50,929 nt of DNA from Girardia tigrina (lineage: Eukaryota): positions 1 to 50,929 of the forward strand of contig MQRK01252856.1 in NCBI GenBank assembly GCA_001938485.1, in the 5' to 3' direction. Positions 2,257 to 42,860 of this stretch are shown here, in pieces. The notes under the pieces were generated by a model. It searched no databases, had not been told where the DNA came from, and was given only the letters and a program-made list of their open reading frames with translations. Numbering within the stretch: the stretch's first letter is position 1; each line of letters starts with the position of its first letter. The position numbers and the translations under genes were made by a program.

Positions 2257-2755
2257 CTCAATTTCCCACTGAATTACTGCCTCACCACTGTTTTCCCCAT
2301 ATGTACAAAAGAGGACAAAATTGGATTTTTGTTCGTAATCAATATGGAATGCTACTAACACCCGTTTAATTTCAGCTACCAGATCTTCTGGACTTTTCTT
2401 ACTTACAATTTCTGTACGGAAAGAAAATCGAAAGTCTCTTGGTTTAGTCTGTACTTTGTTGCCATGATTGGCTATAGAAGAACCACTACTTGTAAGACTT
2501 GTAGCACAACTGCTTATAAGATTTTCCATATCGAAATTTGTAGCTTTATTCGACTGTCCAAAACGTCCTGGTCGATCTGGAAAATATGGTGACGGTGATG
2601 GGGAAGCTTCAGCAGTAAAATTGGACCACTTTTCCTTAGTATCAATATAACGGTTTTGATTTGTGTGAGACCTTTGGATTGACCCTTGTCCCATTGACGC
2701 AGAATCCTGATTCGATGGGGATCGATTTATACTAGGAGAAGGATTTGACAACTTT
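2257..2755 (-). CDS. par-1: MARK/PAR-1 exon: end of spacer and most of the KA1 domain
   Basis: Boundaries tttag|AAAG and GAG|gtaaaa; 499 nt, phase 2 to 0. Encodes [30 protein letters not shown]...FVLFCTYG...VIQWEIE. Confidence 0.93.
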
Positions 2756-5700
2756 CTAAAATTCGAGAAAAAAGATTGTAGAATTTCTTAAAAATTTATT
2801 GCATTTAATAATATAAAACCAGAAAAAAGATTTTAATTACAAAGAAAATATGAATATCCATTTCATTCTATATGAAAAATATTCAAATCGTGCTTCAAAA
2901 GAACTATTGATTGGAAATAAGCGTAGAGAACATGCAAAAAGAATAATAAAAGAAACAATCACAACGACAGCAGGAAACAGTTGACTTACTCGTGAGTCGT
3001 GGCATGCCTCATCCACAAATTGGGTCTGCCATAAATTTATTCGTTAACCACAGAAGGAACAATCAATGATCATTATTGATAATAAATAATTCTTCTATTC
3101 GATCAATTTGTTTTTATTTATCGATTGATTTATTATTTTGCTTTTACGAATTTCGTGTATTTATTTTGAAAACTCAAAAAAGATTTTAGAAATAAATAAA
3201 ATATAATTACATTTTGAAAGAAATTCTTGTAAATATTTTGTTAGATTATATAAGACCGAATGGGCAAATTTACAGTAATAATAATTAAAGATTGAATCCT
3301 TTGAAGATTGATTGAGAAAAACAGTTGAGGAAGGTAAGCTATATGCTCGAGCTATCTTTCCAGGGTTTATATGTCTTTATACTTATTTATGTATTGAGGA
3401 TCAATGTATTTGATTCGTTCACAACAAATAAGGACGAAGAAGAATTATCACTAGTTAATTGTACCTGCAACTATGTCACTTACACATGACTTTGATATGA
3501 ATGAATCCGAAAGGATCTGAAATCAAAAACGGAATGAAAGAAGAAGACAACAGGAATGATCTTCGAAACTAATGTCTTCTGATCTTTCTATGAAGTCAGA
3601 TGAAAAAAACATTAATATAATCCTCACATAAACTTTATATAGGGTAAACCTTTCTTTGTTTTTATAAGTCATAACTACTTTTTTCAATTGATGAATTTCA
3701 TTCAGATTCTTAAATATTTTAAACATTCATTTAGTCTTTAGGAATTTTGACATATTAAACGGATTCATTTTCTAACACGCTAGTGTATTATAATGTATGA
3801 TCAATTAATGATCAGTCACGCACCTGCGTGAAATAAAGTTTGCGCTCATAAGTGATCATCTTATTAATCAGTATTGGGTGTAATCAAATTTTCAGAGACA
3901 TTTTACTTTAAAAACCAGATTATGCTTTTTTTTACAAAAAAGACATTGCACGTATTAATACCAAAGAATTCTGAAGACTACTATAAAAGTACGGCAAAAA
4001 TTTACTGATGAGAAATGTTTACATAGTAAATGCGTTAGATATGAAAGAATAACATAATTAGTGAGTCCAACTTCAAGTTTTAAAATGATTTTAGCTACAA
4101 TATGAAGAGAATGTATTTTATTGGCATGTAAATATTACTGATAAATTATCATCAATAATAAATTTTAAAAAGAATGATAATATTGTATATGTATTATTGA
4201 TTAAAAATTTAATTGAAGCGTTTTTGAAATAGGACATTTTTAATGTTTTCTTACACCAATACCCCAAATTAAAAATTAATTGAAATAAAATATTAAAAAT
4301 GATAATGTCAAATTAATGTAATAAATTTAAATAATCACAATTTATCCTGCACAAACACGGACGCAGGACTGTTTTAGTATAGGTATGTCGAGAAAGTTTG
4401 ACCGAAGGTTTTCTATAGGTATCTAGTGATTGATAAATGTCTATGATATTTACAGTATAGATTGCATATGTGAATGATTTTGTAAAATATAATTCAAAAA
4501 TAATCATTTTTTTCTGTTGCCTACCGGATTTTTTTGGAGATATGTTAATTTTATTGAAGTTTTAGACGTAACAAAGGTAATCCAGCATGAAAAAATTTTA
4601 AAAAGACTTAGAAATATTTATTATGTAAGAGTTACAAAATGAGTTTTTTGAGTCACAAACAAGAGTTTTCAATGAATATTGCAGTATTATTATATTTTAC
4701 TGATTAGAATTGGTTTTTATCACTCATCTACATCAAAATGAAGCTTAGTGTGGTAAATTCGGAAACAATTTGGTAAGCATAATGGCACATTACAGTCAAG
4801 GCACATAAAATAATTTCGTTGTCGAATTTGTTTCGCACTACAAACAATACAATTTCTTCTACTTCGTTTTATACAGTTTTGGATCTTATGGAACATTGTC
4901 TGGAAAGTGACGAGCAACTAATCTCAAAGGTGTAGGAGCATTAGAAGGTCTTCCAACTCTATTTCTCTCTGAAGGACCATATATCTGAAGTATTTTATAC
5001 CACTTCAAAGTTTTCCTAATTGAAGCAGAGAATGATATCTGCATGTCAGTTTCATCAACATCTCCCATTTTTTTGCGAATATTCCATGATTAGAGCGGGG
5101 CTTCATAATTTATTTTCTTTTTATTCTATCAATTTTTCCACTGTTCAAGAAATTCGTATTATTTACAGTCGATAACATGTAGACATCTCATTTGTCTTTC
5201 CATTTCATTGCTAGAAGAGCTGAAGACGAAAACCAGTGAACATCTCCTTTTCGTGATTTTCCAGTGAATTTTGGCAATACTTTACGATTTTTTCCCACTG
5301 TTCCACATGCTCCAGTTTTGTTCTGATGCAATAAATTGAATAGAGTTGGACTAGAGCGCGAGAGAGCTGGACTAGAAAAGTAATAATAATATATAGAAAA
5401 ACACTGCATTAAAAAATTCCTTTTCGTTCAAAAGTTATAAGCCGTAAACCCATATACGGGTCTCCGGTAGTCAACGGGTTAAAGGAAAACTAATTTCAAA
5501 ATATCAGTTAACAAATTGTTTCGAAAATAAATATTATTTTGCAATATTGTTTGAAAGTTTTATTTTCATTGCGTTAAAATGAATTTGAGTCAACGTGATA
5601 TTCGAATGATGATATATAACTGCTGGAAACGTAATTTGAAGCCCCCCGCTATATGTAAAGAGATGAATGCAGCGCTTGGAAGTGGTACTGTTAGTGAGAG

Positions 5701-8700
5701 CACTTGCCGTCGATGGGTAACACAGTTGAACAACAGTGATTTTAATGTGGAAGATCTACAGCGCTCTGGAAGGTTGTCAATGAACAATGATGATGCTATA
5801 TTGCAACAGCTGAATTTGGACAAATACAGCACATGTCGTTCCATAGCACTTGAGTTGGCAATTTCCCATGAGACAGCTCGAAATCATCTCATTCAGATGG
5901 AGAAAAGGTACCTGTGTAAATGATGTATCCAATATCTACTGTCCCCCAGAAAAAATGGCTAATAGAGAAAGAATATGTAACGAGCTGTTAGCAAAGCAAT
6001 CGGCTTTTGATTTTCTTGGACAACTGGTAACCATGGATGAATCATGGATATATTGGGACAATGGAGGCTCACAACATCATCGTTCTTGGCGAGTAAAAGG
6101 AGACAATCCTCCAGAATACTTTAGAATAAAGTACCTTAATGACCTGTTTATGATTTTTAATATTATAAACTACGGATCTGTGAATCTCTAGTGATAAGAA
6201 ACTTCAACTAGTCATTAATTAATTTTGATAATAGGTAAAATGTTTGTAAACTTAAAATTTTTAATAAAATACAAATTATCGTCATTAAGCACTATTATTT
6301 TAATTATTATATTAATTAATATGTATAAATAATAATAATAATATTAGCTAAAGGTAACACAAGATATATCATATTTCTCTTTTTAAATCAATATTTCAAC
6401 CAGGATTTCCTTTCAGAGTACTTTTTTTCATTTGTTAAATTAAAATATCTATAGTTTTAGATAAAAGCAAAAATATACCAACTTGTAATAGTCTAAAAAA
6501 TTTGAATTAATGATTAATTTATTTCTTTTAGTCGGAATAATTCAGGAAAATGAGAAGTGTTCATTAAAAAGTAATGAAGACATTATTTTTCAAGCGTATA
6601 CAATCAGGATTTTCCAGTGATAATAAGGAAGAGAATTAGAAGAAGAATCATCATTGTGAGGAATATTTTTGAATGGAGCTTATTGTATGTTGTTTTAGGA
6701 TTTTGTTTTTCCAACCCAGATGGAAGATTGATATTTTAAATGTTTGAAAACGTCGGATTATTTATTCAATTTTAAAATTTAAATAACTAACTTTAAAATT
6801 AAATTAATATCATAAATAATATATTTAAAATATTTTTTAAAATTATTTTTTAATTTAAATTAGAAATTATTTTGAATTGTAAATAGATTGTAATTTAAAT
6901 TTGTTTGAATAATAAGACTTTTATAAACAGAGGTAAAAATTTATCAATCTAGAACGATGACTAGTTACAAATGTATTGAAAATCCAATTAGTGTTCGTAA
7001 TAATCATACTTCAAATATCTTTGAAAATTATTTTTTATATTGAAGCTATTACTATAAAGAACAGATTTGATGTAATATTATATTCGAAAAATAAAAGTTT
7101 TATCGTAAATTGATACTTGCAAATCAAATTATTTAGTAAAATACATTACTAGTATTTATTAATATTTATTTTTATAATTTTTTAAAGAAATAATTTCTGT
7201 TTGTTGAGAATATCAATTTCTTTTCATTATCTCAGACAAAAGGATTAATTCGAATAATACGGATTAAAATTTAATTCTTTCTGAAATATTATTTTAGCAA
7301 GATTATTATTTACTGATAACTTCATATATTTTAGTTTGATAAACAAATGAACTTTTTTTGTTTTCAACTCTGTAACCTGAATTTAGACTCACTAAATGAC
7401 AGCAAATTTGGATAGCAATAACGAATGATGAAATGTTTAATTTAACTTTGAAGATTTAAAAAATAAATAAATAAAATCAGGAATAATTATTTTGAAAAAA
7501 ATTTAATGCTTCTAAATAAACCTTTAAATTTCAAAAAAAAAAACATTGATTCTTTAAAATAAAAAAATAAAATATTGTTTACTTTTTATTTCTCTTTCTT
7601 TTAACAAATTAACAATTTTTTCTCCAGTTTATACAATAGAAAACAGAGTTTCCTTTAAAAAATTATGTTGAAAAATAACTATTATTCACAATGAAATTAA
7701 TTCAAAAGGAAAGGTTTGTTGAATAATTTTCGCATTGTATTGCAATCTCGAAGAAGAAGGGTTCTTGAAAGGTTTATTTGATATAGAAGACGATTTAGAA
7801 TTTAAATCACAAAATCACGGTATACAGAAGCGATTTTTTTGCAACAAGTTCTGTTTACATCTTCACAAAACCAAGTGAAAGTAGAATAAAAGCAGACAAA
7901 ACGCATCAGACACACAAAACTTCAGTTATTTATTTACATAGAAATATCTCTTCAAAATCGAAATGATAAAAGTTAACGTTCTCATTCAATAAAAGCAAAG
8001 CAACTTACGTGTTACCAACAGTACACAAATACTAAATAAATAAAAACGTAACACAATAAAAAAATAATCAAACTATAGCAAATTGATCGATATTTTATAA
8101 TTAATTGAAAAAGAAAACTAATAATTCATTTGAAATTAATTTTGTTCCGATTTCATTTGAGCATGCTCAATCAAGCAATTAATTTCTTTTGAATGAATGA
8201 AATTGAAAGAAAATATGATAAAATGGCGATCTTAAATGCGATATCCGTCATGTTAGTTATGATAATTTGACAAAAAGATGATTTGTTCGATTTGAGTCAT
8301 TAATGCTGGTAATGATAATAATAATAATGACAATAATAAAATGCCACAACGCGCATGCATCTCACAGAGCAAAGACAACAAAACTATCACAATATCCATC
8401 ATTATATTCCATCAATTCCTAACCTGATATCAACGTCATCTACTTGAGATGTCTGTCTGCAAAATTCAGTAAATTTGAATTAAAGATTATTTTCATACTT
8501 TCATCAAATATTTAACTTAAGAATATTGAATTAATATTTTATTTAATTTTCTTTTCAATAAATATTAAATTTGCATTGAGAAAATATAATCAGATAAAAA
8601 ACAAAACTTGAATAAAATTGACAAAAATTATCAAATCTACATAGAAAATGTTTTGGCAGCCTTGATAAAATAAATAAATTATTACATTATAATGGGTACT

Positions 8701-11700
8701 CAAAATCAGTATTGGAAAAACTAACGAAATAATCTGTTGATAAATTAATTTACGAATTTAGTAATAAGCATACGATGTTTAGGATCAAGATTAAACTTCT
8801 AACACTGATAATATTACTTTATAAATCGGATACGTTCTAACCGCTTCCTATTCAGTAGGATTTCAAAATTTAAAAATTCCATCCTTTGAGCATTAGAGAT
8901 TATGTTATTAATTTAAAAAACAATCTTCCGTATGTACACAGTGTTGTGTTTGGATCTCGCTTACCAATATAAATGTGGGCATCCCATCTCTTTTGAATGG
9001 TATTGAGCCACGAGGCTCTTTAGAGGGTCCACCCAAACTAAAGAGTGCTAGCTGCCCCCCGATAGGCCTCCTATGGTGACGGAGTGCTTCAGTCTCCGAA
9101 ATTTCTTGGGCTTCCCTGTTGCAAACGACCAATCATGGACAGTGGTGCCCTAATTCAGCATCCTTCTGGCTGTATTTGTGGACTTGGTACAGCCGTGAAC
9201 TTTGAACTTTCCTCTCGTATTTGGATCTGCGATCCTAAAAGACAAATCTTTGGGATGAGTTGTTTGCTCCACCACCAATGAAATAGTCGGGGTGACTGTT
9301 GCTGACTGAAAGTCGGTCATTTGGATGAGTGTGGGTTCTTTGTCTATGTCTGAATTGTCACTTCTTCTGTTGTATTGCGCTGATGATTCTGTCGAATGTT
9401 CATTGATATTCTCCTTCATCTATATTCGATGATCTTTACGCAGATGCCTCGTAAACCATCCTTTCATTTTGTAACCTTTGCTGCATTTGGTACACTTAAA
9501 CGATTTTTCATCTTGTGGAAGCTTTAGCGGAATGCTTACTGTGGATTCCGTGTGATCCGGGGATAGAGATGTCTATTCAGCTCCTTTTGTTCGGCAAACT
9601 CCTTAAAGCAACCTTCTATCGTACATTGAAGGAGTTTATCTCTCTCATTGAGTAATTTCGGCAGATCGGTTCTTGTTCTGTTCTGCTTTCCTTCTCTTAT
9701 TAATGAGTTGATGTATTGCCTCTTTCTATAGTGGGGTTTCTGTGGACAATGTGGTGAATGAAGTCTTCATACGTTGCACTATCCCCGAAGAGACACTGTA
9801 TATCCACTGCGAAGCATTCGGAGAGAGCTTGCTTCTTTCTCTCACTGATCTTCTTTCCCATTGATATTGTTGCTTTCCACACACCTCACAATGTTTGGTA
9901 TATCAGAGGCGTCCAACCTGCTATGATAGGCAAGTCTTCTGCTTGCAATGATATCCATGGGGAGTGGGAGTCCAATTTCGATAGTATCCATCTGTATCCT
10001 CTCAGTCTTCTGCACTTTCATGATTGTGCGAGTGCACAAATTGTGAAAGGTAGCCAGCTTCTTGATTGTTTTGCTACCTGTTCGCCAACTCTCACAATTG
10101 TGAGTATACTACGGGAAGTATGCAAGTATTTACTAATATAAATGTAAATAGTTTAACACTACATGCATCTAAGAGGCATTAGGTAATCTCTGTTAGAGAA
10201 TCCAGATAACCGATTTATAATAAAGAGTTTTATTTTGACTAGAGTTTTTTTATTTATGTTCTAGATTTTTGATTTTTTTTCTATTTTCGAACCAGTATTT
10301 CCTAAATTTTATTTTTTTAATATTTATATATAATTAATACTTTTACATAAATATAGATGTGGTAATATTAAAATTAATATAATTTATTTTAATATTAAAA
10401 TAAATAAATACTTGAATATATTTTTATTAATTTTTAAAATCACAATTATTAAATAATAATGTTAAAGTAAAGATAATTTTTTATTACCCGTATATAATTA
10501 TCGTATAATTATTAAATGAAAAAATATTAAAATAAATAATATAAACTAAAATAAAAGTATTTAAAAAAATGAATAAATGTATTTAAATCCTGTAATTATA
10601 ATTTAGTGTATACTCGTTTTTATTGGATTACAAATGGGATGGCATATTTTAACTTATCAATGTATAAGGTTTTAACAAATTCTATAGCATTATTCTCTTT
10701 TTCTTCGTTCTAATCATCAGAATATTGATGTTTATTTTTTTTATTAAATACGCTTCATCGGTTATACTACCAAACAAATCTTCTCACTGAAGTTTAAATT
10801 TTATGTAAATTAGTTGAAGTATATAATTCGATTTCATAAAAATTAAATTATAACGTTTTTAAAATGATTAAAAGAATCACTTTGAATATTTAAATGTGAT
10901 TTAACACCAGAACTATCAACCGGTCAAAATGAAAGGTTGTATAAATTGTTCGCAAGATTTCTTTTTAAATTTCATTTAATATTTTATGATAATATTATGA
11001 CTTGTTCTAATTTTATGCATTTAATAATATTCTTAATTATTTTCATTCCCCAAATATAAAACCGGTCAAAGTAATTCTGGAATTTTTTAATAATTATCAA
11101 ATTTATCCAACAGAATATCAGAATCAGTATCATGGTTTTCACTAAAATTGAAACTTCCTGCCATTCTCTAAGATTGTTAACAACTGAGCTATTCCTACTC
11201 AGTTGAGTATCTAGGATGCAGAATAAATTTCACAATGGAAATTAAAATTTTTGTACATTTTGAATTTTTTTATATAATTTTATTAACTAAACAATTTCTT
11301 ATTACATTCTATAAGAGAAAAATCAGTCGAAAAAATTCATTCGAAACCAAAATAAAATACGAAAATCAACATATAAATCTCATACCTAAATCGAAAATCT
11401 CGAAATTAAATCAATATACAAAACAGAAGTCGAAACAAAAATTCTCATTTTCAAGTGAAAACCTTCTCAGCAACTTTATTTAGTTCCCATTTGTTCTGAC
11501 TATAACGCTTAAACCGTCGAAATTAATTACCTAATAAATCAAATTAAATTGACTGTGATTTGTTATTGCATACGAAACTAACAGGAATTTGTAAAACTTT
11601 GATCTTTAATCATATCCTAGCACGTAATGATAGTCAGATTTACTGTTAAATATTGTTGACAAAGTAAATTTTAATCGCGTTATGTACAAATACCAATGTT

Positions 11701-14700
11701 TGATCTTTATCGATCATTTTTTGGATCAATTCCATCAACAATTGTTTTAATGTTTCGCTTACTTAATGTTTTTTTTTCACATTTTCATAATAAATTACAG
11801 AACAATCATAGTACAAAATATTTTATATTAATAAAACTTGCAAGTATAGTTTCTATTTAGAAAAATAATCAATACTGAAATACAATTTTATAAGTGGAAA
11901 TTGTAACTATTCAAAGTGTAGTAATGAGGAGAGTCACATCGTGAAGAGACAACGGGAAAATTAAACCTCACAGTAAACATGGGCTAGATACAGCGATAGA
12001 CAACACTTTTCCTTCACGTCGAGTGACAAAACAATAAAAGACAACCTTACTGAGTCACCATGCCAAGTGTATTGAACATTTGCACTTATATCATCTGTCG
12101 TATTTTTCCTATTATAACGCTTTATTCTAATAACAAAAATAGAGAATATTCCACAGCTTCAGGTCTCAGTTATATATCTGAATATCGTACGACATAATTG
12201 AACATAAATCTCATTGTAGCTACTTTTTACTAAAATTTAATTAATCAAATTGTTCAAATAATTTCTTTTTTTATATTATTATACAATCTATCGTTAATTT
12301 ATTGTCTTACAAATGATTAAATTAAAAAAATTAATTAACAGTTGATTTTTAAAATTTTAGTCTATATCCATAAGGGACACTTTTCCGACAAAATACTACA
12401 TTAACCTGTGAAATAAATAACGACTCATCAAAATGTATCTTAAGGAATACGGAACTTAGTCAGGAGACAAAACCCACTTACGAAAGAGGGATTTCAGTAC
12501 CGCGTTCTATTAGGTTTTCTAATGAAATATGTGTCCAGGACTTACTTATCTGATTTTCGTACATTATCTGATTTCATTATCATTTGTCAAACTGTACAAT
12601 CAGGGTATTTTTCTTATATAATTTAATTATTTGATTATTGTATAGTAAAGTTAATCCCATTTTAAAGTTTAAATCATGGGAATCTTGATTTCAATAAAGT
12701 GATATGTAGTGGAAATGTAGTTAAAATATGCCACGAGGATCGTATAATTTCAATATTTGACAACAGATTAATTCTATCTAATTATTTTTTATAGAATCTA
12801 GGAATATTTAGTAGAAAGATGTGAAAGAATCTTCCGAGTATATGTGATAGTTTGTTGTTGGAATATATTGTATCTTCTAGAGTAAATAAAATTAAATCTA
12901 CTTAAGGTGCCGTCTATCATCATTTTAATGTACTATTAAATATTCGTGTATAACGCACGGTTACAAGACACCTCAACACATGACATCTCATCACATCCAA
13001 CTCAACATATGATACTTCAACACGCGACATCTCATCACATTGTTAATTTCAACACATTCACATTACATCACGGATAAATGTTTAAAGTTTTTGAGGTACA
13101 TTTAGAAATTATATATTATTTTTAATATATTATTATAATATACTTATTTTATTTTAATTGTAAAATATATTTTAAATTACCAAACGGTTTTTATTAAAAT
13201 TCATTAATATTATTTTATAACAAGAATTAAATTTTGAGTTTAAACTTAATTTTAAAATGTTTCCGACATTCCAAAACATTCTCAATATTTAAATAACGAA
13301 ATATGTTTAAAATATTTTGAAAGTTTTTTATTAAATTCAATAAAAATAAATAAAATAAAATAAGTATATAATATTACATTAATAACAATATATTATTTTA
13401 ATATACTTATTTCTAAATGTATTTCAAAATTTTAAACATTTAACGGCAATATCATGAGAATGTGTTGAAATTAACAATGCGATGAAGTGTCATGTGATGA
13501 GATGTCAAAAATGCATAAGATTTTTAATTTCACGTTATACATAAGTACAATTTTTATTTGATTACAACTGTTATATGTATGTGTATATGATCTTGAGTAA
13601 AATGGTGTAAGTAATTGTAATATCAATGGAATTGAATATTAATAAAATTAAAGTAATTCGAACGGAAATAAAAGTCACAATATGTTGTAAATAAAGAAAA
13701 TGTTTAATAATTATTTAATAGGATTCATAAAAATCACAAAACCTATTTACTATTCTTGATCAATTATTGAGTTTGAACTGTGTCTAAATTGCGTATCGCT
13801 CACGAAGGATGATTACATGAACATTTTAATGAATTTATTATACAACGATAGTGATGATAAAATACGGTTCAAAATTTGACAGTTTTTATCCAACAATTAA
13901 CACTGTACCAGAATCAGGAGAATACATAATTATCAACATATTGAAGAAATACTGTGAAAGAAATACAATTGGATTTCACTCGACAAATTCGAGAATAGAA
14001 TGAAATCTTTGACACCAGTAACAAAAGCAAACATTCATTTGTTTACAGAAAAAACAACAAGAAAAATCTGATAAAATTAAATTTTGGAAAGTATCATAAA
14101 TACAAGTCAAATAATTTCAGATTATTACACATAATTACTTTAAATATTTATCTATTTTATTGAAATAATTAAAATATTTAAAAAAGTTTTATTAAAATTA
14201 ACATCTCAACCAAAATTTGTTATCTTAGAGTTTGCTTAAACATCTTTCTTGTGAGTAGACGAATACATTTTTCCTTCGATTTTGTGAACTTTAATTTTTT
14301 TATTTTTAGTTAGTCTCTTTTTAATCATTTTTAACTACCATGTTTTTACCTTAAAACTTTTAAATTTAAAAATCACAAATGTACACTCTTAACAAATGTG
14401 CATACAATATATTCAGATTTTTCAACAAAATATTTTTTTAAATCGTACATTTCCTAAATATTTGAAAAAAAAATAAATATCATGTATTAATATTAAAAAA
14501 AATGTACTAAAAATTTAAATTAAAATTTGAAAACTTTTTTTTTAAAGCTGGATTAAACTAAAATGCAAATGAATTAAATTAAACTAATAAGTGTACAATA
14601 TTAGTTATATTTAACGTTGCAGAATTATTTATAATTTATAATATATTTATTGATTGTAATAAATCAATTTATTAATAATTAATTTATAATATAAGCAAAA

Positions 14701-17700: not shown

Positions 17701-20700
17701 TATTATCATCATTTAATTTTCCATTTCATATAAACTATAATTATATATTTGTTCTCAAAAAAGATTGAATTTGTTTAAAAATATGAGATAACAAAAGCAA
17801 ATAGATGATAAGAAGTCAAAGGAAATTAATTTCGATATATTTTAAACTGTATTAAATTAAATGATAATTAAATTGTAAATATTAATAAAATATATAAATA
17901 GACAAACTTTTTTGATATTTTGGTGGTAAGTGATTTGAAAAACGAATTGACCGATTTCTTTTTTGATTTTGTTGCTACATCAATCTGTTCAGTTAGGCAT
18001 TCATCTGACGACTTTTTTGAATGACTACTAGCTTTTTTAGGTGGCTGAGGATGACTGATTGATCCACCGAGAGCTATTGGCAAGTTACTGGGCCCACTAG
18101 GACCCCCAACTCCACTTAGGATTTGCTTCTCCAACTGACTTCTTTCACGTTTGTTTTGAGGTACATGTTGTATTGTAGCTCGTTCTGGTGTATTTCTAGA
18201 AAATGGTGACTGTTCACGATTTGTCATAGCTCCAACTGCTTGGACGGGTTCTTCCTTTTTAGTATAAACATTACTGTAACAAGGGGAACCAGTAAATGCC
18301 TGATATGAAGGAACCATGTCGGGCAATCTGAAATATAAATTATACAATTATACAGCTTAAAAATTTTCTACATAGTTTAAATATCGAAACTAAAATAGAA
18401 ATAAAACTAGAAATGAATAGCAAGCATAAGACACCATCTAGACAATATTATAGCAAATAATGTATATATGTATAATATTAGTAGCTGCATAATTAAATCA
18501 GTTAAGTGAATCAGCACGCTAAAAATAATGTGGCCACACCAATGTCTATTAAACAACAGGTCTACCTCAAAGATTGATACCCTTTTGAGGCACGATGGAA
18601 CTTGGTTGATTCATGCGATGTTTCAACATCATTTGAATTATCTGGTTCCCTATAAATAATCAGATATTTCTGATCTACATAATTCTTAATAAGAAGTAAC
18701 AAACAAAAACTAATCTCGTTTATTAGACATGCACAAAAATGGAACATTTTCAATTAACTTACTCAATTAATTTGTCCATTGGTTCGGATATACCAATCTG
18801 TTTGAAGGTATTGGTCACGGATCTCACATTTGACGTATTGGATCGCTGTAATTTTATATTGTATTGATCTTTCTGAGAACTTTCAAGATCGAAATTTCCC
18901 AAATTTAAACTGAAATAAATATTCAAAGACATTAAATAAGCCTATATATTTATTTTAATAATTATATATTTAATCAACTAAATAAATTAAGTGTTGTCAT
19001 CGGGTTTCCTTTCTAGATAATGCAAACGTGGAAATATAGATTTTGAATAAAATACTGATTGAATAATTGATAATAATAATAATGATAATAATTTTTAATG
19101 ATAATGGTCAATATCTTTTTAATGTTTAGAGATGTAAAAATTCAAAAATTTGAATTTAAATGATATAATTTTTCATTTTAATATCAATGATGTAAATGAA
19201 GGGGGTTAGATTATGGGTACATAGGAGACAGAAAAATATAGAATAATCATCGATACCAGCGAGTAGTTAGCATTGAAGCACCAAAACCTGTTCTTAGATG
19301 ACAAAGAAACCTTGACTTGTTATGGTGTTAATAGGATGAAGAGGTAGGGAAAGTGGTATTTAAATCAGTATTTTCTTTTTAAAAAACTGAAATTTCCATT
19401 TTCGCAAACTCTCTATCATCTATATTAGCGGTTCCCAACCTTTTTCATTAGAATACCCCTCTACCTGATTGTTTACTTAGTGGGTACCCCTAACACACAC
19501 AAATAAGAAATCATTTAGTAATTTCAGATATGCAAATATATTTACTTTCAAGACCAGTATTTTTCCCTTAAATAAATGTTTTAAAAATCAGCATACGGTA
19601 CTATTTCCTATTATTTAATCTTTTTAATATAAGAAAATAACCATTTACAATGTGTTTAAAGATTCTTTTGTGTTTTTAGGCTAAATTTGAATTGCATTTT
19701 CCGCCGTAATACACTTTTTGAGTACCCCTAGGGGTACGCGTACCCCAGGTTGGGAACCGCTGCCCCATATCATCATTTTACGGTGTATAGAGCTAATTAT
19801 AATACAGTCAAAAAACCACTGTTTTGAAGTAGTATTTAAGAACGTTATTTCTGTACAAAGATGTATTTTCTACATACAATAATACATTATTGATCTGCAA
19901 TTTCATAAAATTGTTTTAAAAATTACAAAAATATTTGATAAAAAAGAACGTGAAATTTCTAAATTTAAACAAAAATGATTTACAGCATATTTCCAAATGC
20001 AATTGGTGCAACTCAAAGTCTTGAAGGTTTAAATCAGGCGATTTTAATCTGAACTACCCTCTCAAAAACAGATTCTTCATCACAGTTATAAAATAATCTC
20101 TTAAAACAATAACTTGGAACAAATTCAAAGTTTCTACACGATAATTAAAAACAAGAATATGTTCTGACAAAAAGATATTTCGAACAATAATCAGAAGTTT
20201 CGAAAGATCAACAAATCAGAAATTTGGTTACCACATCTACTCTACTGTTAATATTTTCCAGCAGATTTCCATCTGTCATTTTGTATTCCCCAGAGAAGAA
20301 GTGGAACCATGTCTGAATAAGCGGAATATTTTTGAACTTAAAATCAACAATGAGACCATCACGGCAGACGTATACCACCATTTATTTGATCAATTGCGAT
20401 TAGCTATGGCTACTAAGAGACCAGCTTCAGTCAATAATAAAGGAGTCCTACTATAATAAGATAAAATAAGACTGAGAACTGCTCGTGACGGGAATTGAGT
20501 AAGTCATTCCAAAATGTCAATGAGATCAATTAGATTCTTTGAGTCTGAGGATAATAGTTCTAGCAGAAATAGAAGAGCTCTCAAAAAGATGAGATATGTA
20601 TCGATAATGATGACAATTATATAATCACTTTAAATTTTTTTTCAAATTCGATTTTTGAAAATAGTCATGAAACAACGGTTTTTATTCCTTAACTTTACTT

Positions 20701-23700
20701 AGTTAAGATATTTTTAAAAATAAAATTCTACTTCTCTAAAGACAAAATTAAAATAGAAGTTTTGTTAAATGAAAAACTCTATGTATTTTTTAACACTTGA
20801 TGTTGTACATATTATTTTCTTTTCTGATGGATGGAATGTCGGTAATGCAATACAAATAAAATGTTGAATATTTAGGGATAAAAAAATTATAATTAACTTT
20901 TCAAGTTATTTCAGATGTAATCCTACTTGAAAGTTTAGATTTATTCAATCCAATAATACTTTGTCGGATAAAGTAGACAAACCGACGACATACATGTAAA
21001 AACTGTATAATTTAAAACTGAAAAATCTCAAAGAACAAGTTTAGAAAATCATGCTTGAGATCAATGGAACTTCTAAAACCAATTTTTAAAATTTATTCAA
21101 AATATAACAACCCCACATAGAAAAAGAACTACGCGAAAACACTCGGCTAAACCAATGAGTTACAAATATCACTTATTTGTAGACTGGAGTTATTTCATTA
21201 ATTATATTAATCACAATGCGAAAAGGATAATTTTTATCCCTTCAACATAAGTAATACGGACGAACTCGAAAGTTTTCAGTAATTAACGGAAAAACTTGTA
21301 TCTTTCAATAACCGATGCTTTCCCTACTTAGAAAAGCATGGTTCTATAGCTTAACAACAAAGTTCTATGCCTTCAATCAAATTTATAAGGAATATCATCA
21401 TCATTTTTTTACCTTTTCAAATATTGCTTATCCTATAAAAGGAATAAAAGTTACTTTAATTATACATCAATGTCATTTACAGTTTGCAAATGCGGTTTAT
21501 TAGGCCATCAAGTATGAAATATGTAAAACTAAAGTCAAAGCTTATTGATAATTTAGCAACACAAATATTTATATCATTATACCAAAAATGCACCCATATT
21601 ATCGACACACTTTTGCCATTTGAACGATAGCTTGTTGAGGCAATTTGAATAAAAATTTGATGAATGAGAATCTATAAATTCCTGGAAGGCAGTTTTTACA
21701 GAATGCTCGGAATTGAATTTTTTTCTAACAAAAAGTAGTTCAAATTGAGAAAGAAATGTGGTTAGGTCTGATGAGGATGATGATTCAGAAGTTCCAAATT
21801 AAATTTCTGTTGTTTTGTCAAAAACTTGAGTGCAGTATGTGGTTTTGTATTGGTAGTCGACCTGTTTACAAAATGCGGTTGTTTTTCTTTGGGTGTCCAC
21901 ATTATATCTTACAATTGGTTGTATTAGACATCTGCTGTGATAAACGAACCAGTTTTCATGAAGTCGTAATGAATTACACCTGCGACAGACTACTAAACAC
22001 TTATCATCAACTTCTTTTGATGAATGTTGTGGTCTGTACTGTGTTTTGGTGCTTCATTTGTGTCTGCTCAGCTTTCTGAACATTTACGATTTTCATATAG
22101 GATGCAATTTTCATCACAAGTGACGATTCGATTTAAAAACTGATCACATTTATAACGAGAAAGCAAGTAAGTATCCAAACGCTAATGTTTCTGCTTTTCA
22201 TTCAAATTATGTGGAATCCAGTTATCCAAGTTTTTCATTTTACCCATTTGAACAAATCAATTCGATATTATTTGTTTTGTAACATCAATCATTAGTGATA
22301 AATCATCAAAATCTTGTGCTAGATACAACTACACGGTTACCTTCAGTTCGTCATTGTCTACCTACGACCTAGAGACTCTTTACCTTTCACGAATTTCCTG
22401 AACCAATTTCAGACTGACTGCTGCGTAGTTACATTGTATCAGAACACACTATTGATGTTTAACATGGTTTCTGATGCTGAGGTTCCACGTAGGAACTCGT
22501 ACTTCATAATAGTTCGAATTTCTGGTTTTCCATTTTTTGAAATACTGATTTTTAAAACAAGTTAACAATAATTTTAATTAACTTTTATTGACATGTAGCA
22601 ATCAAACAAAAAACTGAGCAACAAAATATTAAGTCATTGTCAAATTATACTATTTGAATTTATTGTAATCATGCCTACAAATTTCATACTTTACCACCTA
22701 ATATTATAATAAAATAAAAATAAAACTGTTCAATGTAAAACCAAAGAAGCATATACCAGTGAATTTCATAAACAGACTACAACAGTTCCAGAGCCATAAA
22801 ATATCCATTTTAAAATCTAAATTGGATCATGTTGAGATACATTTAACAAAAGATATTTTATTTTAGGAATTACAGACGTTTTTCAATCTAATATGCTATT
22901 ATGAATTATTATAGTGTGGAAAAAAATGTTTATTTCTCAATAAAATCTTGAGTACAAACTTCAACTACTACTGATGAAAACATAGCCATTGACTTTTTAA
23001 CGAGATAATATTACAACAAAATAAACCGGTATTAATATATCAGTCCACGAGAAAATATAAAAAGTTTGTGGTGTTGTTTATTCTTTCTTTAAGTTGTTAA
23101 ACTTATCTAAGACCCCCTAGATTAGACAACTGATTAATTAAAATAAATTAATAACAATTTGTGAAAATCAATAAAAAATATTTTACATAAATAAAATCTG
23201 AAAGTTTTCAAAAAAAGATTAAATCAGAAGAAGTTTGGTTGTCCGGTTCAAAAATCAAATCTGCAATTTGACGGAGTCATTCGAAACTATTAGGTCGATG
23301 CATAAGTTTAAGACCTTTGATAAAAAAGGGATATACTTCTTTAATTGTCCCCAGAATCCACGTGTTAATTTTTTTATAATTCTGGAAATGGATACCAATA
23401 AAAATCACATACACCACTGTATATTATTTGTTTAATCTTGTCAAAAAGGCGTCGCGAGAGAAGGACGAAATTTACCAAGCATATGGTACAGGTCCTGTTG
23501 GCCTTACAACGATTAAAGAATGGTACGCCAAGTTCAAGGAGAGCGAATTCAACCTGGAGGACCAGCCACGAAGTGGTAGACCAAAAGAAATGGAGGACGA
23601 AGAGCTTCTGATTCTCTTAGAAAATAATGATGGACAGTCAACCCATGAACTGGCCAAGCGTCAACGTTAATCAGTCGACAGTCCTACGGCGTCTGAAAGC

Positions 23701-35700: not shown

Positions 35701-37635
35701 AAACCTTGAAGATGAAGAAGGTCGAGGTCGTCCAGTTGCTGTGAACAACGACAATTTTAGGACAATGGTGGAAACAGATCCCCGTACAACAATCAGAGAA
35801 CTTGCAGATAGGTTGGGCATTAGTCATTCAACAGTCCTGGATCATTTAAAACAACTTGGAAAAATCAAGAAACTTGATAAATGGGTTCCACATGATTTGA
35901 ATGAAAATCAAAAGAACCGACGCTATGAAATTTGTTCTGCCAATCATCTTCACAATAAAAACGATCCATTTCTTGATCGTATTGTTACCTGTGATGATAA
36001 ATGGATCCTGTATGATAACCGATGTCGATCTGCACAGTGGTTTGACAAAGATGAAGTACCGAAACACTTTCCGAAACCGACAGTTTGGTGGTGTGATGCT
36101 GGAATCATCCACTATAGTTTTTTGAATCCAGGTGAAACAATCACAGCGGAGAGGTACTGTCATGAAATTGATGAAATGCATAAAAATTGAAAACCATTTG
36201 TCCTGGATTGGTCAATCGAAAAAAGTCCCATCCTTCTTCATGATAACGCTAGACCTCANNNNNNNNNNNNNNNNNNNNNNNNNNNNNNNNNNNNNNNNNN
36301 NNNNNNNNNNNNNNNNNNNNNNNNNNNNNNNNNNNNNNNNNNNNNNNNNNNNNNNNNNNNNNNNNNNNNNNNNNNNNNNNNNNNNNNNNNNNNNNNNNNN
36401 NNNNNNNNNNNNNNNNNNNNNNNNNNNNNNNNNNNNNNNNNNNNNNNNNNNNNNNNNNNNNNNNNNNNNNNNNNNNNNNNNNNNNTGTATTGATGCCAAC
36501 GGTTCATACTTTGATTAATAAACTTTTGTTTCTGTGAATTTGCACGTCTTTGAAGTTTGTGTCCCAAAACCACCATTATTTTTCGACCAACCTAATATAT
36601 ATATTAACCTAATATAATATCAATGTTTACTAAGATAAGTTAGCTGTAAAATATATTTTGTCATAAATCACATTGATACAATATTTTTATTATTTGTTTA
36701 AGACTCATTTTAATATCTGAAGAAGTAAAAAAAACTTTAGTGTAATTACGAAAATTGCCCCATGGTCATCATTATGTTTTTAATGTGACATTCCATTGCT
36801 GGGTTTTTGAATTTATAAATATAACTATTATTAGTATTATTCTTTTATAATATTATGTTATCTTATACCTAATCTATAGATACAAGATCTTAACGGAGAG
36901 GCAATATATTCAAATACATTTGTGTAAATATACGATATTCAAGATCGGCAAATTAACAGTTTCAAAACTAAATTAGAATTTATGTTTATAATTATAAATT
37001 ATTAAACAAAAACTTAAAAGTCGAATGTTTCACAAAACATTTTGTACAATTAACAACTTAAAAAACTTTCACTAACCATAATAATATATTATATTATTAA
37101 TTATATAATATATATTGAAATTATTTTTTACAATTCCTAATTTCTAAAAAATATTAAAAAAATAATTAAATCATTGATTTTTCTTATAGAATGAAAATTA
37201 TGAAAATTTAATATATTGAAAATTACGATATTGAGTCTTGGGTAATGTTGGTACTTCTGGATTTGTTACAGAGGGTGTTGTTATTGATGAAATTTGTGAA
37301 TAATTGGTTTGGGGTCTGCTATTTGAATAATTAGATACAATTGAATGGTTTGTAGGCTTGGTCTGTGGCTTTGGCATACCAGGCTCCCATAACAGATAAA
37401 TAGCTGTAATACTGTCGTATCGTTTCTGTTGTAAAGAGTCTGTTATTTGCTGAAGTGTGAAGCCCATACTTAAAAGAACATCTGTTTAAAAATAAATTAC
37501 AAATATATCTATCATTTAAAACTATTATATGATACCTATTTTTGATTGATCATTATAATCTATCTCAGGCTCATGAAATGGTTTCAATAAGCAATCTTCA
37601 TAACCAATATTTATCCAGTAATCTTTCATTATATC
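2257..37635 (-). CDS. par-1: MARK/PAR-1 family Ser/Thr kinase, partial multi-exon gene (CD linker, UBA, spacer, KA1)
   Basis: Exons 37536-37635, 37227-37481, 28067-28243, 27831-28023, 24849-24994, 24599-24803, 18763-18909, 18566-18649, 17908-18327 and 2257-2755 all have GT-AG boundaries and splice in frame (2226 nt). Motifs: [23 protein letters not shown] (post-kinase), [26 protein letters not shown] (UBA), [10 protein letters not shown] and [12 protein letters not shown] (spacer), KPRDFRFSF...LVAEIKRVL...QWEIE (KA1). Confidence 0.93.
2931..2936 (-). promoter_or_regulatory. UGCAUG (RBFOX-type) intronic motif downstream of microexon D
   Basis: catgca on the plus strand reads TGCATG in the pre-mRNA. 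Confidence 0.5.
2990..3025 (-). CDS. par-1: Candidate microexon D ([12 protein letters not shown])
   Basis: Boundaries ttatggcag|ACCC and ACGA|gtaagt; 36 nt, phase 2 to 2. TGCATG lies about 55 nt downstream. Confidence 0.72.
3484..3516 (-). CDS. par-1: Candidate microexon E ([11 protein letters not shown])
   Basis: Long pyrimidine tract, then tttcag|ATCC and ATGT|gtaagt; 33 nt, phase 2 to 2. Confidence 0.72.
4510..5482 (-). mobile_element. Internally deleted piggyBac transposon
   Basis: TTAA-CCCGTTGACTACCGG end at 5482 and a degenerate copy near 4510-4529. Fragments [38 protein letters not shown], and the C-terminal Cys-rich domain RRNCIVC...[18 protein letters not shown]. Confidence 0.88.
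5579..6115 (+). mobile_element. Truncated mariner transposase (HTH plus first catalytic D)
   Basis: [10 protein letters not shown]...VEDLQRSGR and [10 protein letters not shown]; frameshifted and 3' truncated. Confidence 0.85.
7377..7391 (-). CDS. Candidate 15 nt microexon F (ESKFR)
   Basis: Sequence ttgctgtcatttag|TGAGTCTAAATTCAG|gttaca; phase 2 to 2, stop-free; TGC just upstream of the acceptor. Confidence 0.45.
8009..8031 (-). CDS. par-1: Candidate microexon C (YLCTVGNT)
   Basis: Boundaries tttttatttatttag|TAT and ACAC|gtaagt; 23 nt, phase 0 to 2; restores frame after exon A (58+23=81). Confidence 0.55.
8354..8359 (-). promoter_or_regulatory. UGCAUG (RBFOX-type) intronic motif downstream of microexon B
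   Basis: Minus strand reads gaTGCATGcgcgttgtgg within a UG-rich tract. Confidence 0.5.
8424..8456 (-). CDS. par-1: Candidate microexon B ([11 protein letters not shown]) with tandem acceptors
   Basis: Boundaries ttttgcag|Acag|ACATC and CAG|gttagg; 33 nt (phase 2 to 2) or 29 nt (phase 0 to 2) in the same reading frame. TGCATG lies about 65 nt downstream. Confidence 0.7.
8860..10130 (-). mobile_element. Degenerate non-LTR retrotransposon 3' fragment (RTE-like) with C2H2 finger
   Basis: [13 protein letters not shown]...PNIV...SECFAVDI resembles the RTE post-RT region; [24 protein letters not shown] is a C2H2 finger; many stops and frameshifts. Confidence 0.55.
10901..11082. mobile_element. Possible degenerate piggyBac-type MITE
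   Basis: ttaa-caccagaactat...accggtcaa on the left and accggtcaaagtaattctgg on the right. Confidence 0.3.
11967..11983 (-). CDS. Candidate microexon A2 (PMFT, 12 nt; or PMFTVR, 17 nt)
   Basis: Acceptor tgtatctag|CCC lies 67 nt after exon A. Donor is gtgagg (12 nt, phase 0 to 0) or AG|gtttaa (17 nt, phase 0 to 2); both are frame-compatible. Confidence 0.35.
12051..12108 (-). CDS. par-1: Candidate alternative small exon A ([19 protein letters not shown])
   Basis: Boundaries ataatag|GAAA and CTCA|gtaagg; 58 nt; open in phase 2; ends in phase 0. Confidence 0.6.
12960..13507. mobile_element. Foldback/MITE-like element with long (~250 bp) inverted arms and subterminal GACATCTCATCACA repeats
   Basis: Left arm gacatctcatcacattgttaatttcaacacattc...tacatttagaaat matches right arm atttctaaatgta...gaatgtgttgaaattaacaat...tgtgatgagatgtc. 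Confidence 0.75.
15104..16222 (+). mobile_element. Deleted hAT (Charlie/Buster-like) transposon
   Basis: TIRs cagtaccaggcaacct and aggttgccgactgttg; 8 bp TSD tacaaaat/cacaaaat; dimerization domain remnant [15 protein letters not shown]...EH..DCVRL.T..YEPD...QHQGSH*. Confidence 0.88.
17406..17562. mobile_element. Tc1/pogo-type MITE
   Basis: Ends tagttgaacctgtctaatccg and ccggaatagccaggttctactg-ta; internal repeats of ctaatccg. Confidence 0.65.
17908..18327 (-). CDS. par-1: MARK/PAR-1 spacer exon with aPKC-site-like motif and basic motif
   Basis: Boundaries tttcag|ATTG and AAAA|gtttgt; 420 nt, phase 2 to 2. [11 protein letters not shown] resembles MARK FPRG.SSRSTF; [13 protein letters not shown] resembles S.FSK.TSK. 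Confidence 0.9.
18566..18649 (-). CDS. par-1: MARK/PAR-1 spacer exon ([28 protein letters not shown])
   Basis: Boundaries ttatag|GGAA and TGAG|gtagac; 84 nt, phase 2 to 2. Confidence 0.82.
18728..18733 (-). promoter_or_regulatory. UGCAUG motif in the 113 nt intron between two symmetric phase 2 exons
   Basis: TGCATG about 30 nt after the 18763 donor. Confidence 0.4.
18763..18909 (-). CDS. par-1: MARK/PAR-1 spacer exon ([14 protein letters not shown]...PMDKLIE)
   Basis: Boundaries tttcag|TTTA and TTGA|gtaagt; 147 nt, phase 2 to 2. Confidence 0.85.
19426..19762. mobile_element. hAT-Charlie-like MITE
   Basis: 16 bp TIRs tagcggttcccaacct and aggttgggaaccgctg; subterminal gtacccc palindromes; partly conserved 8 bp TSD. 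Confidence 0.85.
19800..20690 (+). mobile_element. Highly degenerate mariner-like element
   Basis: Remnant [31 protein letters not shown] of the catalytic region; weak terminal inverted similarity. Confidence 0.5.
21500..22701 (-). mobile_element. Mariner element, degenerate transposase
   Basis: TA-flanked TIRs ttagg...aagtatgaaat and atttcatactt...cctaa; [20 protein letters not shown] and KWQKCVD fragments. Confidence 0.88.
23290..24464 (+). mobile_element. Mariner (DD34D) element with stops and frameshifts
   Basis: TA-flanked TIRs ttaggtcgatgcataagttt and aaatttatgcatcaccctaa; [21 protein letters not shown] and [13 protein letters not shown]. Confidence 0.95.
24599..24803 (-). CDS. par-1: MARK/PAR-1 spacer exon ([13 protein letters not shown]...GSNKNP)
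   Basis: Boundaries ttttag|ATAA and ATCC|gttagc; 205 nt, phase 1 to 2; follows a 45 nt intron. Confidence 0.8.
24849..24994 (-). CDS. par-1: MARK/PAR-1 spacer exon ([10 protein letters not shown]...RIHPHSN)
   Basis: Boundaries attag|AAAT and AATG|gtactt; 146 nt, phase 2 to 1. Confidence 0.82.
25151..25769 (-). CDS. Candidate MARK/PAR-1 exon spanning an assembly gap
   Basis: Strong acceptor ttttttttctag|AC at 25769, open in phase 1 (MCEILYL). After the gap an open frame reads [19 protein letters not shown]...LIKTW* with GT sites at 25157 and 25154. The interior is N. Confidence 0.35.
25919..26004 (-). CDS. Candidate alternative MARK/PAR-1 exon ([28 protein letters not shown])
   Basis: Higher-GC island bounded by aataag|G and CTA|gtaaac; 86 nt; open only in the phase 2 frame delivered by the upstream exon; ends in phase 1. 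Confidence 0.4.
26670..27420 (-). mobile_element. DD41D (rosa/Visitor-type) Tc1/mariner fragment
   Basis: FHQD-x41-D ([19 protein letters not shown]); upstream SDDSTFHL motif; one TA-CATGGTGATC end. Confidence 0.85.
27831..28023 (-). CDS. par-1: MARK/PAR-1 spacer exon ([13 protein letters not shown]...SEKESE)
   Basis: Boundaries ttttag|ATTT and CAGA|gtaaat; 193 nt, phase 1 to 2; follows a 43 nt intron. Confidence 0.82.
28067..28243 (-). CDS. par-1: MARK/PAR-1 spacer exon ([23 protein letters not shown]...GPATY)
   Basis: Boundaries aatag|CC and TATG|gttatc; 177 nt, phase 1 to 1; open Ser/Thr-rich frame. Confidence 0.8.
28695..30028 (+). mobile_element. Mariner element, Mos1/mauritiana-like; interior in an assembly gap
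   Basis: Near-perfect TA-flanked TIRs ttaggtgtacaagtatgaaatg; [19 protein letters not shown]...CERWFRRF and [20 protein letters not shown]. Confidence 0.93.
32273..32693 (-). other. GC/CpG-rich island with two overlapping short ORFs of unknown origin
   Basis: Markedly higher GC than the flanks. ORFs of 72 and 70 aa join into about 140 aa with one frameshift. No motif recognised. Confidence 0.35.
33040..33606 (+). mobile_element. Penelope-like element 3' fragment (GIY-YIG endonuclease), ending in a hammerhead and (TA)n
   Basis: [26 protein letters not shown]...SSILDH, followed by a hammerhead, AATAAA and (TA)n. Confidence 0.85.
33531..33567 (+). ncRNA. Minimal type I hammerhead ribozyme
   Basis: ATGA-CTGATGA-T-GCC(GTAAT)GGC-GAAA-CATG-TC|TTGT; intact core, palindromic stem III (ACATGT), GUC cleavage site. 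Confidence 0.85.
34341..34543. mobile_element. TA-flanked Tc1/pogo-type MITE
   Basis: TIRs ccgggatttttcgaaaataagcg and cgcttatttacggaaaatcccgg with TA on both sides. Confidence 0.85.
35355..36595 (+). mobile_element. Mariner element, cecropia/Hsmar1-like
   Basis: TA-flanked TIRs ttaggttggtcgaaaaataatgg; [54 protein letters not shown]; contains stops and an internal gap. Confidence 0.95.
37227..37481 (-). CDS. par-1: MARK/PAR-1 exon: UBA domain and start of spacer
   Basis: Boundaries aaacag|ATGTT and TATC|gtaatt; 255 nt, phase 1 to 1; follows a 54 nt intron. Encodes [32 protein letters not shown]. Confidence 0.92.
37536..37635 (-). CDS. par-1: MARK/PAR-1 exon: kinase C-terminal end and CD linker ([33 protein letters not shown])
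   Basis: Boundaries tttag|GAT and ATAG|gtatc; 100 nt, phase 0 to 1. Matches the MARK IMKDRWMN.G.E..ELKPY.EP pattern. Not in the ORF track. Confidence 0.93.
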
Positions 37636-38149: not shown

Positions 38150-38348
38150 TGTTAGGAAGAATATTAGTATTATTAAATTATTATTCAAAATTATAAACAT
38201 TCAAATAAATATTAATTTATATAAAATTATTTAAATGTGGTTCCAATTATTTCATCATTAATTCTCGCATTTTTTATGTAATTGTTTTAATTAGTAAATA
38301 TATTTTTGGGAAACGAAGTTATTGTGTAATTCTTATTAAAAACTAATA
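38150..38348 (+). repeat. 5' LTR
   Basis: TGTTAG...CTAATA, a direct repeat of 42855-43051. Confidence 0.95.
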
Positions 38349-39361
38349 TGGCGACCACGTTCAGTTATTGGAAAAATCTGGTTCCCGATACATACAATGG
38401 AGAAGATAATCTTGAAGAATTTATCGAAGAATGCGGAAGATTTTATGGAGTTTCCGGCACCGACCCCAATCTCAAAGGAATTATTGTGAAGGCTTTTATT
38501 TCAAAGGATTTAATTCCAATTTATCAGAAAGTGGATTCGAATATCGTGGAGTTTGATGAAAGGCTCAGAGCAGAATTTGCCAAACCTTCATCCCTTATTC
38601 AAAATTTCATGAATTTATATTCATATGAAAAAGGATCAGATGGAGCAAATTTATATTTCGACAAAATCGGGAAAATGGTAAGAAAATTATTGTCCCACAA
38701 ATGGGATGAAAAAGAATTGATGGCCTATTTCTTGGTACATTGTACGAGAAATGCCACAATTAAACGAGAATTGACTCTACGGGATGCCAAGGACATGGAT
38801 CAGATCAAAGATGTTATTCGAAAAATTGAAAATGTTGAAAAGGAAGAATCAATGCATATATCAGCAATGAATCGTAAAGAAACCTAGGCAAAAGTCGTTC
38901 AAAAGCGTCAACAGTATTCGAATTCACGGATTTATAAATCATCAATGGAAAAGACAAAATGGAGTCATCAAAACAAACCACAGCCGAGAAATTTAGTCGT
39001 ATGTTGGAGCTGTCAGATGCAAGGACATATTAGCTGGAATTGTCCAAACAAAAGCGTCCAGACCAAATGTCATGCATGTCAAAAACATGGGCATATTCGA
39101 CGAGAGTGCCCGAACATCAAATGCAGCCACTGTAAGAAAAATGGTCACTTTAGTTTTCAGTGCTGGCAAAAACGGGAAGAAAACTATATGAAGCAGAGAT
39201 ACTATCATGGAATGAAGGCCGACGGATCGAGAAAGAGCATTGCGGCATTGGATGAAAATCGTGATGGAATCGAGGGCTTTGATGACGAACACGAAGAAAG
39301 AGATCAGACCCCAAACGCTCAGGCTCCATTAAGGCGAGAGGTGATGGGAGCCATCTTTTAA
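38348..39361 (+). pseudogene. gag: Gypsy gag (one in-frame TAG) with three CCHC zinc knuckles
   Basis: ORFs 38348-38887 and 38945-39361 are in the same frame; CWSCQMQGHISWNC, CHACQKHGHIRREC, CSHCKKNGHFSFQC. Confidence 0.9.
39310..39352 (+). promoter_or_regulatory. Candidate -1 programmed ribosomal frameshift signal (C CCA AAC plus stem-loop)
   Basis: X XXY YYZ heptamer in the gag frame, 5 nt spacer, stem GGCTCC-ATTA/TGAT-G-GGAGCC; the -1 frame is open to 39699. Confidence 0.75.
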
Positions 39362-42300: not shown

Positions 42301-42860
42301 CATTTGAATAGAAATTAATTAGAATCATGTGTGAAAAATTTCATATCAAATTAGAGTTTTCAAGTCCATACCACCATAATACAAATGGTATAATTGAAAG
42401 GCAATTTAGGACTATTCGGGATTATATCAACACGACAAGTGAGACAGATAAAAGTAGGAATTGGGTTGATTTACTTCCAGAAATTGAATTTCATTTAAAT
42501 GCTACTGTGCAAAAATCATTACAAATGAATCCAGCAGAAATAATTTTCGGTTTTAAAATCAATAGAGAATAGGTTGATACAAATAGAGCTGGTAATAGAG
42601 AAGAACGGAAACAAACAGCTATCAAAAATCAAAATTTAATTACTTATCAAAATGACAATCGTAGAAATAGGTTTTTTGAAATAGATGACAAAGTGTTAGT
42701 AAAAAAAGAAGGTCGTGGGAAAGATGAACACAGGTATGAAGGTCCTTATCGAGTCATTAAAAAAATTCATGATCGCAGTTATGAGTTGGAAAACGATATC
42801 GGTAAAAAAATTATACGCAATATAGAATGGTTAAGGTCTTTTAAGAAAGGGGGATGTTAG
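39310..42860 (+). pseudogene. pol: Gypsy pol (PR-RT-RH-IN), disrupted
   Basis: LLDTGA; SPWNTP...RLCLDFR; MPF..AAAPATFQR; YLDD; DTDAS...GAVLSQ; NADALSR; CHAG; VDRGKTF; PYHHNTNGIIER; GPY. Confidence 0.92.

Follow-up and report, generated by a model that had tools for sequence, protein, structure and literature searches.

Short candidate cassette exons, one of them conserved between species, in the phase-2 intron after the basic motif of a planarian PAR-1/MARK paralog

In human MARK3, phase-2 introns right after a basic motif contain a regulated exon of 27 nucleotides (nt) and a second exon of 45 nt (PMC4978528, supplementary files 3 and 4), and for two MARK genes of Schmidtea, Solana et al. (2016, PMC4978528) list regulated exons of 51 nt and 96 nt. 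In the same planarian, the motifs of BRULI (UGU) and MBNL (GCUUGC) are enriched in the intron downstream of the exons that these proteins enhance (PMC4978528). Here we analyzed a 50,929-nt stretch of Girardia tigrina DNA (contig MQRK01252856.1, hereafter the window), which carries on its minus strand part of a gene that, by its domains, is a divergent planarian PAR-1/MARK paralog. A first-pass annotation of this DNA had proposed that one intron of the gene, of 15,152 nt and of phase 2 at both flanking exons (one ending at 17908, the other starting at 2755), hides an array of up to seven short exons, here called A, A2, B, C, F, E and D (Table 1). The intron hides at least one real short exon, D, which is conserved between species, and probably three to five in all.

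The position of the intron is a known one. The basic motif at the end of the 17908 exon is homologous to FFSKLSSKFSK of other MARKs, and the human introns with the 27-nt and 45-nt exons follow the homologous motif. The short alternative exons of vertebrate MARKs that the first-pass annotation had named for this position are indeed described: the cassettes of human MARK2 and MARK3 lie in the same phase-2 intron (PMC4978528, supplementary file 4). As in those genes (e.g. HsaEX0037925), the intron studied here comes directly after a motif of the F-x-K-L/F-T-S-K type, between the spacer and the KA1 domain, and holds a short symmetric exon (D). A second MARK paralog of G. tigrina (C218969) encodes nearly the same protein as the MARK of Schmidtea mediterranea shown in PMC4978528 and shares the phase-2 intron, there 6.2 kb long; invertebrate MARK proteins, too, vary in length at the basic-motif point. 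Together with the human introns, this marks the site as ancestral and known for alternative splicing. The 6.2-kb intron of C218969 contained no GTAAGT and no match in the joint test described below. The flatworm gene differs from vertebrate MARK2 and MARK3 in having up to five candidates, two of them asymmetric, against two vertebrate exons, and in having about 108 extra spacer residues before a KA1 that is divergent and split by an intron. No peptide can be aligned with those of the 27-nt and 45-nt exons except for a loose SFR in E, whose peptide starts with SFRI where the 27-nt cassette of humans has SFRF; this possible likeness spans 3-4 residues, and the two exons differ in length. What may be new is how many cassettes there are, together with the asymmetric pair, the site itself being known.

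The strongest evidence for a hidden exon comes from a related species, in which a genomic contig of 1,192 nt (L016, run SRR33002330), encoding the protein P0001, covers D and ends before E and the other segments. D is identical at 35 of its 36 positions, with 22 of 25 positions kept on the acceptor side and 13 of 14 on the donor side, and both splice sites are preserved. The single change is synonymous in the 2-to-2 frame and non-synonymous in both other frames. In the next exon, by comparison, 46 of the 59 four-fold sites differ (78%), and the neighbouring intron reaches only 38-49% in a forced alignment with many gaps. Identity of this degree, with a change that is synonymous only, next to such four-fold divergence and an otherwise unalignable intron, argues that D is an exon under strong selection, and we regard it as almost certainly real. 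The first-pass annotation had made its proposal depend on the segments being better conserved than the flanking intron, which is what we found for D. Conservation of silent sites and of intron flanks is typical of regulated cassettes. In both species GCATG and UG-rich sequence lie at most 60 nt downstream of D, and we infer that D is alternative rather than constitutive. The protein encoded by the KA1 exon is 89% identical in P0001. The low-complexity spacer, too, is 89% identical at the protein level in this contig despite its saturated four-fold sites, an unusually strong constraint for a supposedly disordered region. Neither D nor the KA1 exon was found in the JGI metagenomes.

All seven segments were reproduced on the minus strand with the coordinates, lengths, AG/GT borders, phases and open frames first described, as were the flanking exons, the GTAAGT donors of three segments (C, E and D) and the sense codons at every permitted junction (the junction codons were checked locally). 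Exons were searched singly. The segments differ in how well they resemble exons. B, which can be read as 33 nt (B33) or, from an inner acceptor, as 29 nt (B29), ranks first of 390 donors in the intron by splice score, and B33 is probably a real exon; the B29 acceptor (8452) scores -6.2, and its use is doubtful. C is likely to be real as well. For E, which lacks the downstream UG/YGCY signature discussed below, exon status is plausible, and so it is, with somewhat less assurance, for A, whose in-frame acceptor at 12126, 18 nt further up, has a better T-rich tract than that at 12108. F and A2 have splice scores below zero and look like noise, F being improbable as an exon and A2 highly improbable. 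The proposed array thus keeps D by conservation, B and C as likely members and A and E as plausible ones, and loses its count of seven. The name microexon, which had been given to all of them, also fits in part: with a definition of 3-27 nt (PMC4978528), it applies to C (23 nt), F (15 nt) and A2 (12 or 17 nt), whereas D, B and E (33-36 nt) and A (58-76 nt) are small exons. Two further GTAAGT donors, at 12545 and 12481, lie at 12482-12549 on the minus strand and were absent from the first list; they have weak acceptors and no downstream UG signature.

The intron downstream of several segments is rich in motifs of known planarian splicing regulators. In the 100 nt after the donor, UGU and YGCY together number 10 for A, 7 each for B and D and 6 for C, against 2 each for E and F. 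These counts place A, B, C and D in the top 0.5-8% of intron windows, the cluster of A being the densest (top 0.5%). TGCATG occurs 65 nt downstream of B (8359) and also downstream of D. In a joint test, with 227 kb of control DNA, we asked for segments that combine a good donor with an acceptor and an open frame and are followed by 6 or more UGU/YGCY motifs. In one setting, the test returned exactly A, B, C and D in the intron and nothing in the control DNA. Across 48 settings, B and D were always recovered, and C whenever the window was at least 100 nt, P ranging between 0.1 and 3e-7. A is lost once donors are judged by their match to the consensus, since its own donor matches at 5/9. Under these post hoc thresholds, A, B, C and D show the downstream enrichment of CELF/MBNL-regulated planarian exons, and E and F do not. 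The segments thus resemble the planarian CELF/MBNL programme of cassettes and microexons (PMC4978528), whose short cassettes likewise have UGU/YGCY in the downstream intron, with the difference that regulation is here suggested by the motifs. In addition, the Schmidtea MARK exons are single cassettes, and the 51-nt one belongs to the C218969-type paralog, where it lies upstream of the basic motif.

Rows of short exons are also known from two other systems. Schistosome micro-exon genes (MEGs) encode secreted proteins and consist mostly of symmetric microexons, and Dscam arrays are made of duplicated, mutually exclusive exons with docking sites. Like this intron, they line up several short exons that may be used in combination, and the MEGs are also flatworm genes. 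In contrast to both, the segments here are unrelated in sequence, lie in one intron of a kinase gene and show no pairing. Duplicated exons with docking/selector pairing of the Dscam type were not found: duplex energies among the segments were within background, so pairing through docking sites was rejected, and no repeats occur among the segments. A repeat origin was ruled out as well, all seven being single-copy, with no allelic or paralogous copy of any of them in the G. tigrina assembly. Structured RNA was excluded by the lack of any Rfam match.

We favour the reading that an ancestral phase-2 intron of this paralog gained several short alternative cassette exons whose inclusion is enhanced by CELF and MBNL, and as a whole we give it a probability of about 0.62. 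After the basic motif, the intron would have accumulated several short cassettes, normally skipped or partly included. Their inclusion would be enhanced by binding of CELF (BRULI, at UGU) and MBNL (at YGCY) in the downstream intron, as for planarian cassette exons generally. The symmetric D, E and B33 would each add 11-12 residues to the disordered spacer beside the basic motif, and these insertions may, depending on the cell type, tune how the kinase binds its partners, is phosphorylated or associates with membranes. The basic motif may act in membrane binding, a role that our literature search did not confirm. The first-pass annotation had placed the exons just upstream of KA1; direct adjacency is not supported, as the insertion adjoins the basic motif and the KA1 core (RFSF) begins only after 108 residues of the 2755 exon, which makes a direct effect on KA1 less evident than had been implied.

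Several observations weigh against this reading. Splice sites alone are not above chance in this intron, and the AG/GT borders with open frames to which the first-pass annotation had pointed are so common that we reject them as evidence in themselves: 793 YAG..GT segments between 9 and 80 nt long have at least one frame free of stops (159 being of phase 2 with a length divisible by 3), and GTAAGT, with 5 copies, does not significantly exceed the 3.1 given by dinucleotide shuffles (P 0.22) or the 2.2 of control DNA (P 0.07). Since true donors of this genome often match the consensus poorly, formal exon candidates come cheaply. The splice matrix was built from 18 donors and 20 acceptors, mostly of short introns, the thresholds of the joint test were set after the segments had been seen, and in some settings false positives appeared inside a mariner remnant (6135, 6144). 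The conservation data concern D in one other species, the evidence for the exons is genomic DNA sequence, and none of the segment peptides was found in any protein of the databases; protein searches with the exons returned two relatives from genomic contigs and no transcript-derived protein. The same counts, and the abundance of pseudo-exons to be expected where real donors are weak, speak for the rival that the intron has no more than one or two real exons (D, perhaps E), whether constitutive or simply alternative, and that A, A2, B, C and F are pseudo-exons, to be expected in AT-rich sequence where splice sites need to meet few requirements. That C and A each break the frame alone also fits. 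However, this rival has to set aside the first rank of B by splice score, the presence after B and C of D's downstream signature, which is rare in controls, and the way in which the 2-to-0 phase of A is complemented by the 0-to-2 phase of C, and we consider it rather unlikely.

Other alternatives start from the reading frame. On paper, A, B33, B29, C, E and D allow 16 in-frame and 32 broken combinations, and 80 combinations are reached with F and A2; the dozens of isoforms of which the first-pass annotation had spoken are not supported. A keeps the frame only with a 0-to-2 partner, that is C or B29, and C is in frame only with A, being otherwise a frameshifting (poison) exon; A, B33 and C together are in frame by length yet are killed by stops. 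A freely combinatorial array with such phase-locked pairs (A followed by C, or by B through its inner acceptor) would produce 16 or more isoforms, up to 80 with F and A2. It would agree with the sense codons at all permitted junctions, and the stops in A+B33+C would make B29 and C exclusive partners of A. On the other hand, the B29 acceptor is poor, F and A2 are unsupported, segment pairing does not exceed background, and one 2-to-0 and one 0-to-2 segment complement each other often by chance, which makes this array quite unlikely. In a frame-enforced form with five cassettes, A would be used only with C or the 4-nt-shifted B, while D, E and B33 would be free, giving about 16 PAR-1 isoforms as a cell-type code beside the basic motif, and transcripts in which A or C is unpaired would be lost to nonsense-mediated decay; this form we regard as unlikely. 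The basis for such decay is that A alone or C alone leads to a stop 21-26 nt into the 2755 exon, the penultimate one, far upstream of the last junction, and since one more intron follows this exon, an unpaired A or C would trigger it. The same stops are what is expected if C, and A, are simply poison or truncating exons; A read through its donor would moreover end the protein at 11964 without KA1, in a frame open for 65 codons from stop to stop and with AATAAA/ATTAAA 200-480 nt downstream. But stretches open for 65 codons are no rarity, AATAAA-type signals abound in AT-rich DNA, and A and C together restore the frame. Poison exons seem very unlikely as the explanation of the segments, and they can be reconciled with the reading we favour, that of several CELF/MBNL-enhanced cassettes.

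The gene comes from an AT-rich assembly of 1.43 Gb in 255,254 contigs, in which it is single-copy; runs of N all lie outside the intron segments under study. A MARK-type, AMPK-related kinase domain is followed by a UBA domain. The kinase exons lie beyond the window on the same contig and strand (70135-70554) and have 80% identity to an insect-type MARK (P0067) over the partial domain covered; their T-loop is TFCGSPPYAAPELF. The UBA region matches MARK UBA domains with tblastn E values of 1e-11 to 1e-15 and the Pfam family UBA_SIK3 with an E value of 1e-4, below the cut-off. Spacer exons are situated between the UBA and KA1 exons; the 18327 exon is 83% identical to P0153 of another species, with the same exon end. 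At the C-terminus, the 2755 exon resembles MARK/PAR-1 tails over its residues ~100-166, and the Atlas neighbours are KA1 domains. The last exon of the gene is off the contig, beyond the phase-0 intron; a phase-0 exon at C234771:1294-1407, which starts exactly where KA1 breaks off, is a likely candidate for it. Directly upstream of the 18327 exon, an 84-nt phase 2-to-2 exon (18565-18648, minus strand) is a possible further cassette; its splice scores are modest, and the flank downstream of it is UG-rich. In the spacer exon at 24568-24803 (minus strand), the frame continues to a stop after a basic motif of 12 residues; its donor is unclear, and it may be an alternative end. The assembly also contains several copies of another MARK KA1 exon (L004-L008), some with stops or an insertion, which are likely pseudogene copies.

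Table 1. Candidate segments of the intron and exons of the PAR-1/MARK paralog (positions in the window)
Feature	Position	Strand	Remarks
Segment A, candidate exon, 76 nt	12051..12126 (58 nt from 12108)	-	phase 2 to 0, donor GTAAGG
Segment A2, 12/17 nt	11967..11983	-	inside the UG-rich downstream flank of A; acceptor score -7.4, worst of the set
Segment B, candidate cassette, 33 nt	8424..8456	-	phase 2 to 2; inner acceptor +4 nt gives 29 nt, phase 0 to 2
Segment C, candidate 23-nt microexon	8009..8031	-	phase 0 to 2, donor matches consensus at 8/9
Segment F, 15 nt	7377..7391	-	acceptor score -3.1, no downstream signature
Segment E, plausible cassette, 33 nt	3484..3516	-	phase 2 to 2, long pyrimidine tract, TTTCAG, GTAAGT
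Segment D, 36 nt	2990..3025	-	phase 2 to 2, conserved between species
Two exons, end of kinase-domain linker and UBA domain	37390..37635	-	tblastn with MARK proteins, Pfam
Upstream spacer exon, ends in 11-residue basic motif	17908..18327	-	phase-2 donor GTTTGT
Downstream exon, 108 spacer residues, then first part of divergent KA1	2257..2755	-	phase-0 intron after QWEIE

The window also contains mobile elements. A broken mariner/Mos1 transposase remnant (Pfam HTH_48) lies inside the intron at 5579-6191 on the plus strand, antisense to the gene, and further mariner pieces are found at 23428-24350, 35741-36190 and 48101-48601. Between A and B, at 9060-10140 (minus strand), a GC-richer insert with a C2H2 zinc-finger-like frame containing stops is probably the front end of a non-LTR (long terminal repeat) retroelement. 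A putative degenerate piggyBac-like remnant, with a cysteine-rich end recognized by eye, occupies 4700-5470. In an upstream intron, the gag-pol region of a Gypsy-type LTR retrotransposon, split into several frames, extends over 38348-42572 on the plus strand.

In a flatworm paralog, the intron that contains regulated short exons in mammalian MARK genes thus also hides a short exon, D, that is strongly conserved and invisible to annotation based on open reading frames, and there are possibly more short exons here than in vertebrates. Most likely we are dealing with a larger version of a known splicing feature and not with a new system; the finding extends known biology and overturns none of it. 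If the larger array were true, it would offer a case, accessible to RNA interference, for studying the control of polarity-kinase splicing in stem versus differentiated cells, and exon pairs coupled by their frame.

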